A program made the position numbers and the translations under genes. Shown piece by piece: positions 3,035 through 19,400 of a stretch of 64,000 bases of DNA (its first letter is position 1; each line of letters starts with the position of its first letter). The stretch is from Oikopleura dioica. Its lineage: Eukaryota > Animalia > Chordata. The stretch is taken from the NCBI GenBank assembly GCA_907165135.1, contig OU015568.1:9672001-9736000 (forward strand), read 5' to 3'. Under the pieces are notes generated by a model. That model was not told where the DNA came from. It worked only from the letters and a program-made list of their open reading frames with translations, and did not search any database.

Positions 3035-3507
3035 AGATCGCCCCAAAAATCGTAATGATGATTATCAGCCGATTGAAAATGCTCCCTCCCTTTATTATCT
3101 TTCTCAAAGTTCTCAAAGTGAATAAATACTCTCTTTTATTTTCGATGTTTTGAAACTAGTCCTTCCATATTCGCATCATGACGCATGAATAAAACGACGT
3201 CTAGTTCAACAATTTGAATGCATAAGTTTAAATATCAAACAGAATCGATCGTCAAGAAGCAGCAATGGTCAGGGCTAATGATCAGTGATTTTAGTCTTGC
3301 ATGACAGATGCATTTTAAATTGTTTAAAAGCCAAAATAGATTAATTTTATTAACCGTATGGAGTAATGAGTTGATGACTTAGTGCCAAACTTTAGTCTTA
3401 GTTTTATCATAATAAAAATGTCATTTCTAGGTCTTTCGTCATTGACTCTCGATTTAAAGAATCTTCTCAGATTTGTAAAAATGAAACCAGATCTTATACG
3501 ATAATTT

Positions 3508-14367: not shown

Positions 14368-16372
14368 TTACAGTCGTTGGCGTAGATAGTTTCGTTCCTT
14401 TCTGACGAAGTTTTCACTTGTTCGGGAGACGCTAAGCTCGCATATTCATTTTCTAATCTTGCCAAACTTTCACGAGCAATAGAGAACTCGCCTTCTTCCA
14501 TACCTTCACCAACGAACCTTAGACGAATGTTAATTTGTTGGTATTAGTACTGATGAATTTACCAGTGAACAAATGCTCTCTTTGCATACATCAAATCAAA
14601 TTTTCGATTGACCATTTTAAATACTTCTACGATGTCAAGTCTATTTGTAACAGAGCAAACTGACGGATCAGAAGACTGCAGATCGTATGTTCTTGGAAGA
14701 GGTGGTGGTTGCGACTTCGAAGAGTTAAATGCAAGTGACTTTTATCGTAATTTTATTTTTGAACTCTTCCTGAATTCGAGCAGGATTCCAATTTGCAGAT
14801 TGAGTCCTATTTTGGCAAAAATTGAATTCTTTCTTCAGTTTCTGTATTGTTTTACTGATAGATTCGCTTCTTACATTTCCACGGTATAATAAAGAAGTGC
14901 TCAAAAATGGACCTTCTGACTTTTGATTACTTATCGAAATGAATTGATTCTAAAAAAAATAAAGATGCAAACACAAAATTATTCTTCTAACCTCAGACTT
15001 GAAGCAAAAACGACTCATCTCATGAATCGAATTGTTTTCTGCAGTATTCTGGCTTTCCGGAGAAATAAGAGGAGCACATGAATATGAAAGATAATTTATC
15101 CTTGGCTGCGGAACAAGACTGTTGATAACATTTGAAAAGTTTGCTATCGATGGATCTGTGAATCTTGTAGATGCTGTAATTGACGAAATCACCTTTCAAA
15201 CATGAAGAATATTTATGCTGAAAGAATGTTTTACCTGTGCAATAAGGCGGTTCGTATTATAAAAGCTCGGTATTTCTACGTCCAAATAATTCTGGCATAT
15301 TTTATATAAAGCTTGATTATCGAACATAATTGAACAGCTAGAAAGATTGCGTCCGTACTGTCTTCCAGCATACAGGAGGGCATTGTAAGGTTCGACCACA
15401 GAAGACGCAAATTTAGGCGAAATAAAAACCGGCACTTCCATAATCGGCACCTTAGTTTCCTTGATATATTCAAGGAGTAAGGCCGTCAAGCCAGAACCAG
15501 TTCCACCACCATGAGAATGATACACAATTATTCCTTGAAGGGCATCGCACTGTTCTTTGGCGCTTTCTACATTTTTCACCAGAGGCTCAATTATTTCCCT
15601 TCCAATCGTATAATGTCCTCTTCCATAGTTACTAGCAGAGTCTTCCTTGCCGTTTATCATGAGCCGTTGATTGTAAAGAGATCCGTAGATCGAGTTTTTG
15701 ACAGCATCAACGACATTCGGCTCTAAATCGGCCATGACTGCCCGTGGAACCGCTTTTCCAGTTGCTTCAGAGGGTTAAATTTGAACTGTTGATTATTCGT
15801 ACATTATATATACAGTGCATATTCAACAATTCCTGATTGATAGAAAAAGTCTCGTATGAGTTGTCAAAGGTCGAAAACGAGTCTTCAGGAATGGTTCCAT
15901 CAGGATTGATGCCATGTTCGTAGCAAAAAAGCTGCCAAGAAGCGGCGCCGATTTGAATTCCCGCCTGACCAACATGAATCGATAATATTTCTCGAGGACT
16001 TCTATCTACTCTTTCTCTTGCTCCAAGAGGAGGTGGAGTAATAGGTGGAGGGCTTGGACTTCGTGATCGTGGTGGTGGAGTCTTTGGTTTAGGCTTTGGT
16101 TTTTCTCGTCTAAGTTTTTGAAAAGATCTCTTTTGCATTTTCGCACAATTTACTGGGATGAATATTTTGCGCTTATTTGCGGAGGGAGCCGACTAATTAC
16201 CAACGATCGACATTTTGATTACCAATGTTCATTAATTTTAAGAAAGTCTAGTGATAAAAACTTTTCCTTGAGTTTTTGGTTTTTCTCGCTTATCTTCATC
16301 CTTATTGTTTGGCTTTTCAACAAGGTTATTTTTCTCTGGTTCAACTACATTTTTTGACTCCGAGCAGCCCAT
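14368..16372 (-). CDS. Divergent alpha-tubulin-like protein with acylated, Pro-rich N-terminal extension
   Basis: [78 protein letters not shown] and [11 protein letters not shown] match alpha-tubulin. Exon 16262-16372 (MGCSESK...) joins in frame via GT-AG intron 16193-16261. Splicing at about 14720-14830 is unresolved. Confidence 0.85.
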
Positions 16373-16984
16373 TTTTTGATATCAGATGAGTTTTTGACGG
16401 CATTTGTCAGGAGGAGGGTTAGTTGTCAATGGACACGAGAATAAATAAAGTTCTAACAATTGCTGTTATCGGCAATGTCTAAACATCGTAGTGATGGCCA
16501 AAGGGAATCAAACATTCTCTGTGGGAAGCATTTTTTCCTACGAAGGATAAGCGAAAGTGGGTACGCCCAAATACTGTGTATGTGGCTTGTGGTATGCTTG
16601 TTGTTAATTCCAACATTGGAAATTTGCATCAAAATAGCAGTAAGTTACCATATAAATATTAATTTTCGATGAAAAAGTTCGAGTTTGAAGATGTGCTACT
16701 TGTAAAAAAATAGTTATTTTTTCTCGTTGTATAATTCTAGCACTTTTCTAGGTGGAGATTTTGTTAAGATTATGCACGGAATTTTTTACAAGAACTCATA
16801 GAATGGGTGGAACCTAAAGCTGACTATAATTTGTGTTTTCTAAATCTTACAAAATAGTTAATGTCACGGAAAAACGACACGTATTTCTATATTCAGTTAT
16901 ATTCTTATGAGTTCAATATTATCTCTAGAACATCACTTATTATCGTTAGATTTTTTCAATACCGAGATCAGTTTGAAAGCGTAA

Positions 16985-19400
16985 AAATGGACCCGACACG
17001 CGCAGGGATTTCCGCCTCTGCTACAGAAGGGCTCAATCCAGACTCCCTTCAGTCAATCATCGAGGACCCAGAAGGAAATCCCTTTGAGATAATTCTTCCT
17101 GATGATAAAATGTAAGTTTTCACGGTATAACGAATAGCTTTAGTCTAATACCTACAAAATTTGTAGGCTACAAATTAGCATAAATTTTAATAGCCCTTTT
17201 TAGTGATATAAAAGACCTGGCGGACGAAGCAGCCGATTTGCGCTCAAAATACGAGACCTGCGAACAAGTTTACCTCTGGGCGTGCAGGAAACTCGGCTGC
17301 ACTCCCGTCACTCCTTTCATCAGAAATATTAATCAGGAGCTTTGCAATTTAGGTGAGTTCTCAATTACTTTTTCCCACAACAAGCTACTCTTAGATGACT
17401 ACGGCCTCGGAGAACGAGGAACAAAAGCGCTGTCAGTGTCTCTCATCATCAATACAAGCATAATCAGACTTCAATTAGCCAGCAACGCGATTGGTGGCAA
17501 TGGAACTTACAGTATTTGCAACATGCTGAAGGAGAACTGCTTTATCACAGAATTGGTTTTAGGTGAGTCACAAGACCTGTAGCTTGCCTTCAGTAGCTTG
17601 TAATCGTTCATATAATTGACGTAACTTCCTACGTGGCAATGAGCTTCTGAGGAATTAAGGTTTTTGTGGAAATGACTCCTACCTGTAGCCCATTAACAGA
17701 GGGCTCCACTTATCGTTAGATTTTGCGTCTTAAAGTATTGGGCTACCTGGTAGACTCTACCTTCAAAAAGAAAAAACTGTGAAAAGTTTGTCTCAAAATC
17801 TAAGGCTTATTTTCTCACTAGTTTCCGAAGATAGGCCTACACTTTAAAGACGCAAAGCTAACGATAAAGCCGCACTTTTAGAGGGGCCCTCTTGTATCTC
17901 TAACGGTACAAGAGTTCAATTTGTACCTCTCATATCTTTTACGTTGGTTTTTTTATGACAGGACAGCAAGAAAATTTGGTTTTACGAAAAATGATAAGCG
18001 TAGATTGCTTTTGCCCTAAAACAGTGAAAAAGACTTGTTGCCGCGTAATGAATATCTTTAAGGGTTATGCTAGCTATTTACTTTTATGCATACTACCGAA
18101 AGTGCAAGAACACGTTTCTGCGGGTCTTCGTAGGGTCAACTTTCGCAAACAGAAGAATTTCGAACAAAAATCATTTCTATCGACTTGTAACTTTATTTTA
18201 GATAGCAATGATCTTGGCTCCTTTGGGGCAGAATGCGTTTCAAAAATGTGCGAAGACAACCGTTCAATAAAATATCTCTCGTTGCGAAACAACGACTTTC
18301 AAGATCAGGACGCGCAAATACTCTGCGATGGAATCAAGGGCTCCCTGACGCTCGAGTACTTGGATCTCTCACAGAACAAGTTCTGCGAGACCCAAGCTAT
18401 CGGCCAGCTGATCAATCAAAACGAGTCGCTCAAGACGCTGAAGCTGCACTGGAACATGCTCCGGCTCGATGGGATGAAAAGCGTCATCAGTGGATTAAAG
18501 GAAAACGTCAGCCTCAAGCATATTGACCTCAGTTGGAATGGCATTGAATCTCGTCATTGCGGCGAGCTTGCAGATGTTCTTACAAGTAAGTTTTCTTATG
18601 CTTCTGATCACATGGTCAATGGACCATGTTTTTAGATGGTGCGGTAGAAACGCAACGCAAGCAATTTGGTGTTGCATGAATCATGCAGCATGATGCAACT
18701 TGCATCTGTAATTTTAGCCTTGACAAATTTCTATCAATGATTGATAATCAATCTAAGTTTCAGATTAGAAGAAGGACACGTATTTGAGTTTAAAAGTAAA
18801 GTTCGAGTTCAGGCATACATTAATGTCACAATCATTGACGATGTCTTGGCCATTGGAATATGCCCGTTACGCACATAATTGTACCCTTTCAAAGTTCCCG
18901 GCAATTTTCCGTCATATCAGAACTCTTTTAAAATCGAATTTTGCCGAAAACTTTCTAAACTAGAAACACCTTTTTTCTTGCAATTATTCAACTCTTCTTT
19001 TAAGCAAACAACACCTTGCAGCAACTGAACGTCAACAACAACCGAATCGATCCAACAGGCGCGATGACGCTCTGCCGCGGCCTCCAGAACAACGAGTCAA
19101 TAACTCACTTCCACATCAAAGGCAATCCAATCGGCGAGGACGGCTTCAATGCAATCGTCAGCGCGATCATCTACAACACGCGAAACATCATCGAGCATCT
19201 TGAATTTTCAAAAATTGACTTTCCAGCGAAAGAAACTGTTGAACTCATGAAGGAACTCTCCCAAATGAAAAAGTCGTCTCAGTCTGATCATAACTTTCAA
19301 TTCTGCTGTTGATTTATTTCTCGACAAATAAATTTTATTTTTTTAATAGATAGAAGTATTCAACTTGAACCCTTTTTGATTACTTTCTCCATAATTTAAT
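16985..19400 (+). CDS. LRRC74-like RNI-type leucine-rich repeat protein
   Basis: YLWACRKLGCTPVTPFIRN followed by RNI-type repeats (LEYLDLSQNKF, LKTLKLHWNML, LKHIDLSWNGI). The family assignment comes from recalled motif similarity. Confidence 0.7.
17710..17867. repeat. Intronic inverted repeat with about 27-bp arms (MITE-like)
   Basis: ttatcgttagattttgcgtcttaaagt (17710-17736) is the near reverse complement of actttaaagacgcaaagctaacgataa (17841-17867). Confidence 0.75.

Follow-up and report, generated by a model that had tools for sequence, protein, structure and literature searches.

Does Oikopleura dioica encode an alpha-tubulin that is held at the membrane by lipids on its own N-terminus, or does the lipidation signal belong to a separate short peptide encoded ahead of the tubulin? 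The question is raised by an alpha-tubulin-like gene on the minus strand (16372-14334) of a stretch of 64,000 nucleotides (nt) of contig OU015568.1, which is referred to here as the window. An earlier note, made from the letters of the window, had joined a short open reading frame (ORF) beginning with Met-Gly-Cys (MGC) to the tubulin and had proposed a lipid-anchored tubulin. Comparison with related sequences points in another direction. We lean, with some reserve, towards the reading that the inner ATG at 16138 is the tubulin's own start, that the MGC exon is a conserved upstream ORF (uORF) of 43-45 codons in the relatives, and that the fusion of the two frames seen in the window arose recently, is not under selection or is an artefact.

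The gene model has seven exons and, if read from the MGC ATG, codes for 578 amino acids (aa). The exons lie at 16372-16262, 16192-15814, 15764-15235, 15192-14992, 14949-14770, 14714-14563 and 14517-14334, the last of them including the stop, and the introns measure 69, 49, 42, 42, 55 (GA-AG) and 45 nt. As far as the junction itself is concerned, the earlier description stands. The ATG at 16372 opens 37 codons (MGCSESK...KTQGK) in an exon 1 of 111 nt, with a TGA in frame four codons upstream; a predicted GT-AG interval of 69 nt follows (16261-16193), and the frame continues from 16192 (SAPSANK...). The exon 2 reading quoted there agrees with the sequence, except that a stretch ARERVDRSP had been omitted. 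From the acceptor, a link of 54 nt (16192-16139), which is free of stops in the window, leads to the inner ATG (MQKRSF...). The remainder of exon 2 (16138-15814) encodes a basic/Pro-rich extension of 48 residues and, by alignment and Pfam, the start of the tubulin fold; from the inner ATG, the window codes for about 523 residues. A stop-free junction in frame is not improbable by chance, a rough estimate being the product of about 1/3 for the phase and about 0.3-0.4 for a run of 18 codons without a stop in AT-rich DNA. The REKPK that had been noticed in both exons is present as well, and it forms part of a 26-nt A-rich direct repeat of 81% identity.

Seven related O. dioica sequences (L001-L007), from at least three other lineages, were compared with the window and were grouped by synonymous divergence. 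L001 (ENA, 8.5 kb), L003 (Bergen scaffold FN653018.1, which carries CBY22337.1), L004 (JGI, found via a 28-nt pattern) and the orthologous contigs L006 and L007 are of the Atlantic type. L002 (ENA, 1.3 kb) represents a second lineage, at a synonymous divergence (dS) of about 0.94 from the Atlantic type. L005 (ENA ERZ27264819 k141_84966, 896 nt) is the closest to the window, with a dS of 0.47 and 91.6% nucleotide identity. The grouping agrees with the published picture of cryptic O. dioica lineages, which split about 7 and about 25 million years ago (PMC11067885). It was also observed that L005, despite this dS, is nearly identical to the window in protein, which points to one more O. dioica lineage, akin to that of the window; its distance from the window looks similar to the distance shown by the public RNA runs.

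The MGC frame runs into the tubulin frame in none of the seven relatives and is continuous in the window only. The link measures 54 nt in the window and in L005. It is 56 nt long in all five contigs of the Atlantic type, where its tubulin frame holds a TAA and a TGA, and 57 nt long in L002, where that frame holds a TGA. Spliced, the MGC ORF of L001 and L003 comes to 45 aa and stops at a TGA that is 8 nt short of the tubulin ATG; for L004 and L002, none of the frames that can be entered through the acceptor leads into the tubulin frame. Because of these varying lengths and stops, the link evolves as the tail of a leader or uORF and not as part of the tubulin ORF. Alternative splicing that would restore the fusion in the Atlantic type was considered and is judged implausible, as two stops lie in the tubulin frame between the acceptor and the ATG, and the only phase-compatible AGs are Lys codons in the Pro-rich region, which lack acceptor features.

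In L005, the difference lies at the donor, which reads GGAAAAA/GT there and GGAAAA/GT in the window. Exon 1 of L005 is therefore 112 nt long and of phase 1, and its spliced MGC ORF has 43 codons and ends 34 nt before the tubulin ATG. The fusion in the window hinges on the length of this one A-run (16265-16262), four A adjoining the GT donor, which sets the phase of exon 1. In the four relatives whose sequence extends to exon 1 (L005, L001, L003 and L006), the MGC ORF ends before the main ATG, as is expected of a uORF, the stop falling 8-34 nt before it under the spliced model; in the window, where the frames are fused, it does not. That one polypeptide carries both the acylation signal and the tubulin is not supported, in view of the stops of the Atlantic type and L002, the donor shift of L005 and the Bergen model (CBY22337.1 / E4WY93), whose annotated start is the inner ATG. 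Judged by this comparison, a lipid-anchored tubulin does not appear to be a conserved state, and if there is a membrane-anchored tubulin at all, it would be peculiar to this single lineage or assembly.

It is conceivable that the uORF has fused in frame in the lineage of the window, so that the main product would be a 578-aa alpha-tubulin-like protein, N-myristoylated and Cys3-palmitoylated, with a flexible basic/Pro-rich linker of about 100 residues to the membrane. The frame is indeed open from 16372 via the GT-AG intron into the tubulin, a complete seven-exon ORF assembles, the MGC ATG is the first ATG and has a strong context, the acylation pattern is present, and the 54-nt link lacks stops in both the window and L005. 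However, the fusion is disallowed in every one of the seven relatives, which come from at least three lineages, and L005, the closest of them, differs precisely in donor phase. Further, the fusion rests on one A-run in a gene whose T-run (discussed below) is one base short relative to the relatives, and codons 15-37 of exon 1 are nearly neutral. We hold a functional fusion of this kind to be unlikely, though not negligibly so.

Several points weigh against the separate uORF that we favour. Provided that the window sequence is correct and that splicing of the intron follows the prediction, the 578-aa fusion would be made. Since the window and L005 share the stop-free link of 54 nt, a fusion of the whole clade that was lost in L005, or an error in the L005 contig, is possible. 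Exon 1 is present in only five sequences, and the tail of the uORF past the acceptor has no clear coding signature. Four O. dioica RNA runs (three bulk, one single-cell), from a source lineage only 90-95% alike to the window, gave no reads from the tubulin gene, a result that lends no support to the uORF reading or to the fusion and refutes neither. The likeness was measured on reads over the neighbouring gene, at 17000-17600. The sole reads placed on the tubulin gene were canonical tubulin reads cross-matching GEGMEEGEF at 14481-14518.

The next question is whether the MGC ORF is a coding sequence at all. The MGC exon, with GT directly after it, is kept in all four relatives that reach that far upstream, and the comparisons of exon 1 rest on these and the window (W), i.e., five sequences: W, L005, L001, L003 and L006. 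The context of its ATG is strong in all lineages (A at -3, G at +4). The MGC frame is the sole frame that is free of stops in all five, and the differences in length are in-frame (a 21-nt indel). Gly2, Cys3, Ser6 and Lys7 are invariant in the five, and each of them gave a true result in a regular-expression check for the myristoylation pattern of PROSITE PS00008, G-{EDRKHPFYW}-x(2)-[STAGCN]-{P}. Codons 1-14 (MGCSxSKN[V/I]VEPEK) have 6 synonymous and 2 non-synonymous codon changes (P 0.004), and codon position 3 takes 7 of the 10 minimal changes (P 0.02); codons 15-30 evolve about neutrally. By these counts, the first 14 residues are under purifying selection, and they fit a predicted signal for myristoylation and Cys3 palmitoylation, as the earlier note had proposed from the MGC start. 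The comparative evidence says that the start of the MGC ORF is, in all probability, translated.

Dual-acylation signals of this SH4 type are known from Src-family kinases, G-alpha i/o, RP2 and the trypanosome calflagins. The likeness consists of the Met-Gly-Cys start, Ser6, Lys7 and the agreement with the PROSITE pattern, acylation being predicted here from sequence. The difference lies in the carrier, which is a peptide of 43-45 residues in the relatives and a tubulin in the window only. Pattern scans of genome contigs and viral contigs gave no further loci, and the MGC exon is single-copy in the window.

Does the MGC exon share an mRNA with the tubulin? Directly upstream of the MGC ATG lies a conserved non-coding block of about 140 nt (16373-16511), likely the promoter and the 5' untranslated region. 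The window and Bergen L003 are 60-67% identical in this block; further upstream and in intron 2, the identity is 27-47%. The genes that adjoin the tubulin gene differ by lineage, being a divergent plus-strand gene from 16984 in the window and an astacin gene in Bergen. Because the block moves with the tubulin gene while the neighbours differ, it belongs to that gene. Conservation falls to background right after the GT and rises again about 35 nt before the acceptor, a profile that fits a promoter-exon 1-intron-exon 2 layout. The interval of intron 1 spans 69 nt in the window and 68 nt in L005; in the Atlantic-type sequences it is 100 nt long. The acceptor, ATTAG/TC(C/G)GCTC, is kept in all lineages. 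From the conservation profile, the conservation of donor and acceptor and the promoter-like upstream block, we infer that exons 1 and 2 are on one mRNA.

The end of intron 1 is peculiar in its own right. The part at 16227-16193 (AATCAAAA..CGATC..GT.ATTAG) is conserved in all lineages; the 5' half of intron 1 and intron 2 are unalignable. Such conservation is beyond the normal need of an O. dioica acceptor and could mark a regulatory element, a promoter inside the gene or a context for trans-splicing.

It could also mean that the MGC ORF is off the tubulin mRNA. The tubulin transcript would then start near 16227-16192, from a start site of its own or by trans-splicing to the TTAG acceptor, and the MGC ORF would be either a relic that is not transcribed or an independent tiny gene, whose unspliced ORF would have 44 aa in the window and L005 and 32 aa in the Atlantic type. 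O. dioica makes frequent use of trans-splicing, the roughly 35 nt before the acceptor are conserved above the expectation for an O. dioica intron, and the unspliced ORF lengths are equal within clades. On the other side, conservation drops right after the GT as it would at an exon-intron border, the unspliced tails are not conserved (VFITRLS vs SLIIRHS), the unspliced leader of the window has extra ATGs, and no conserved poly(A) signal follows the short ORF. The pre-acceptor region is also unlike the spliced leader, though this similarity test does not address trans-splicing itself. Two separate transcripts are, on balance, improbable.

Two origins that had been considered for the pre-acceptor block were rejected. 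Under a retrogene idea, the block would be a relic of the spliced leader; local alignment with the O. dioica spliced-leader sequence (PMC6883708) was no better than with shuffles (p 0.5-0.75). Under a duplication idea, it would be a copy of the conserved REILSIH coding block, and the resemblance was not significant (p 0.14-0.69).

What kind of tubulin follows the inner ATG? Exon 3 (15764-15235) carries the core of the guanosine triphosphatase (GTPase) domain, including GGGTGSG, and is matched by Pfam Tubulin (PF00091) at 1.2e-35; the match within exon 2 starts at residue 68 of the exon translation. Pfam Tubulin_C (PF03953) matches exons 4 and 5 at 8e-4 and 1e-4. These values miss the whole-protein cut-off because the exons were scanned as fragments; the orthologue P0268 (CBY22337.1) has both PF00091 and PF03953. 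All 60 of the PDB matches listed are alpha-tubulin chains (E about 1e-48 to 1e-51). The named protein matches are alpha-tubulins at 44-49% identity, and P0124, which is of beta type by reading of its sequence, stands at 39%. The predicted product belongs, by fold and similarity, to the alpha-tubulin class, as had been claimed for it. Exon 3 was searched against 5.8 billion proteins and 1.84 billion representatives; with a handful of orthologues it has 69-71% identity, and no other tubulin exceeds 49%. The gene is a lineage-restricted, fast-evolving alpha-tubulin-like paralogue of O. dioica. GGGTGSG is intact in the window, and one Bergen and one L002 sequence have one substitution in it. The ratio of non-synonymous to synonymous divergence (dN/dS) over the tubulin body is 0.03-0.15, which indicates purifying selection, synonymous sites being saturated between the window and the Atlantic type; between the window and L005 it is 0.027 over 68 codons. 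No paper that names CBY22337 or E4WY93 was found in the literature.

Several changes concern catalysis and the two ends of the protein. In exons 4-7 (15192-14334), the T7/H8 sequence DLNEFQ of canonical O. dioica tubulin is replaced by NFSNVI in the window and by NFNNII, NFNNVI or NFNNIV in the orthologues. The catalytic Glu254 is changed to Asn, and Asp251 to Asn, in all lineages seen. The acidic C-terminal tail, which ends in Tyr or Phe and is where glutamylation and tyrosination take place, is missing in the window, and the Bergen protein ends in ...EYESTRNGS. No lineage has the MREC/MREV N-terminus; 48-62 residues lie between the inner ATG and REIL in all of them. As read from these alignments, the product would lack three features of canonical polymerising alpha-tubulins, namely Glu254, the acidic tail and the MREC N-terminus. 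The tail of the window (exon 7, 14517-14334) is about 30 residues longer than that of Bergen and is unrelated to it in sequence.

The extension after the inner ATG is a constant part of the gene. The inner ATG (MQKRSF, MQNRF or MKNRF) and the basic/Pro-rich stretch are kept in all seven relatives, with in-frame indels only; the alignment took in the window, L005 (P0382), P0383, P0384, CBY22337.1 (P0268) and P0121. What the earlier note had taken for a linker genuinely belongs to the tubulin: in every lineage it is conserved as an extension of the N-terminus. Within exon 2, a block of 48 nt (15997-15950, minus strand) was found to be nearly free of synonymous change: 15 of its 16 degenerate codons are identical in the window, L001, L003 and L002, the background being 31% (P 3e-7). 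The block also holds three 6-bp palindromes, CTCGAG, ATCGAT and GAATTC. A conserved RNA structure linking it with the leader was looked for with RNAalifold over 300 columns and was not found (-18 kcal/mol, with an unfavourable covariation term of +0.88). In L003 (6001-7673, CBY22337.1), the Bergen model is apparently mis-spliced at the border of exons 2 and 3 when set against the reading in the other lineages.

A second homopolymer bears on how far the window sequence can be relied upon. The T-run at 15848-15844 is one base shorter in the window than in L005, L001, L003 and L002, which shifts the frame over the TFF motif: the window has ETFSINQ at the place where those four have ETFFY(Q/T)S, which corresponds to the TFF of canonical tubulins. 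Because the T-run is short, the donor of intron 2 as modelled (GT-AG, 49 nt, 15813-15765) is needed, and the ORF of the window survives via this other GT, 24 nt downstream. At the homologous site, the sequence of L005 is compatible with a GA..AG intron, and L002 lacks an intron. The short T-run is either a real shift or sliding of the donor or a miscount of the homopolymer, i.e., an assembly error.

Taken further, this would mean that the copy in the window is decaying or mis-assembled at homopolymers, so that neither the fusion nor the 578-aa model corresponds to a real protein. The T-run does break the TFF motif unless the other donor is used, and the missing reads in the RNA runs would fit such a copy. 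Yet the other exons of the gene are all intact, the dN/dS against L005 is very low, as given above, and the intron that rescues the frame is a canonical GT-AG one of typical length. A decaying or mis-assembled copy is very improbable, more so than either of the two alternatives weighed before it.

Some further observations concern the introns. At the site of intron 2, a non-canonical intron, AA..AG or the like, seems to be required in the Atlantic type. Intron 5 of the window (14769-14715) starts with GAAGAG and ends with AG, and the 55 nt have to be removed for the frame to hold; its counterpart in L001 (about 3066-3131) is 66 nt by count and open, and the Bergen annotation handles the region differently. 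The presence of introns also differs by lineage: L002 lacks introns 2 and 3, L001, L003 and L004 lack intron 3, and the window has both.

How would a uORF of the kind that we favour act on the tubulin? Ribosomes would start at the MGC ATG and produce a short, possibly lipidated peptide. Because the context of this ATG is strong and the gap to the tubulin ATG is short, the latter would be reached by reinitiation or leaky scanning only. Since tubulin synthesis would need such events, the uORF may throttle or localise it. A bolder proposal is that the MGC mini-ORF yields a dual-lipidated membrane micropeptide, which works with the GTPase-dead alpha-tubulin-like protein of the same mRNA and may tether the mRNA or the tubulin to a membrane. 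The fusion in the window would then be a 'Rosetta stone' in which the two partners are physically linked as one lipid-anchored tubulin that blocks hydrolysis and could seed or cap stable microtubules at a membrane. We regard this proposal as a long shot.

uORFs with a conserved peptide are known from other genes, the MIEF1 microprotein being an example of a microprotein that is made from a uORF. The human insulin uORF protein, INSU, is reportedly another. The gene described here resembles them in its strong upstream ATG, in an ORF that ends just before the main ATG and in a peptide under purifying selection. It differs in that the constrained part is an N-terminal dual-acylation signal and in that, in one lineage, uORF and main ORF share a reading frame. 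A narrow literature search turned up neither a lipidated peptide from a uORF with a link to tubulin nor a conserved acylation-signal uORF upstream of a tubulin; the combination of a conserved leader uORF with a dual-acylation signal was thus not found described for tubulin.

Divergent alpha-tubulin isotypes that lack the modification sites of the tail are likewise known, and include the Tetrahymena alpha-like tubulins, Drosophila alphaTub67C and human TUBAL3. The O. dioica protein shares with them a fold derived from alpha-tubulin (47-49% identity to canonical), a lineage-restricted distribution, fast evolution and the loss of the acidic tail. Unlike them, it has a basic/Pro-rich extension of 48-62 residues in place of MREC, together with Asn254. 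What remains as the result is a divergent tubulin isotype with a conserved-peptide uORF and a lineage-specific in-frame state. O. dioica has retained, across a lineage divergence estimated at about 25 million years, a tubulin with a natural E254N change, a Pro-rich extension and no modifiable tail.

In recombinant human alpha-tubulin, E254A and E254N slow or block the hydrolysis of guanosine triphosphate on the neighbouring beta-tubulin and give hyperstable microtubules (PMC7018511, PMC8764682). The same residue is replaced here, but the O. dioica change is natural, is conserved in all lineages seen and comes with D251N and other T7/H8 changes. Because the replacement of E254 has this effect in the human protein, a stabilising or capping role is suggested for the O. 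dioica protein, if it polymerises at all.

The statement of the earlier note that a lipid-anchored tubulin has no precedent needs to be qualified. S-palmitoylated alpha-tubulin is known, and there are lipid-anchored binders of tubulin. According to one report (PMC11238091), an N-terminal myristoyl and palmitoyl motif takes one such binder, STMND1, to membranes. STMND1 and the palmitoylated stathmins resemble the present case in having an N-terminal dual-acylation motif on a polypeptide that interacts with tubulin, but they are stathmin-domain proteins and not tubulins, and no stathmin-like domain is present here (PMC11238091). A real and functional fusion in the window would make this the first tubulin to be membrane-anchored by N-terminal lipids, although the comparative evidence argues against this as a conserved state. 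The locus also shows that one homopolymer base at a splice donor can make a uORF look like an N-terminal domain, which calls for caution in the annotation of compact genomes from long reads.

Lastly, the neighbours of the tubulin gene offer a few observations of their own. The next gene on the same strand (from 14032 downwards, 13823-13002, minus strand) starts with MGCNSSRSANV, another Gly2-Cys3; its exon of 273 aa had no match in Pfam, and the gene does not lie beside the tubulin gene in L001 or Bergen L003, so that this arrangement is not a conserved one. On the other side, the divergent plus-strand neighbour (16984-17600) starts at ATG 16984 (MDPTRAG...), the two start codons being about 610 nt apart. 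RNA reads from the diverged lineage support the skipping of a 93-nt stretch, 17112-17204, in this neighbour.

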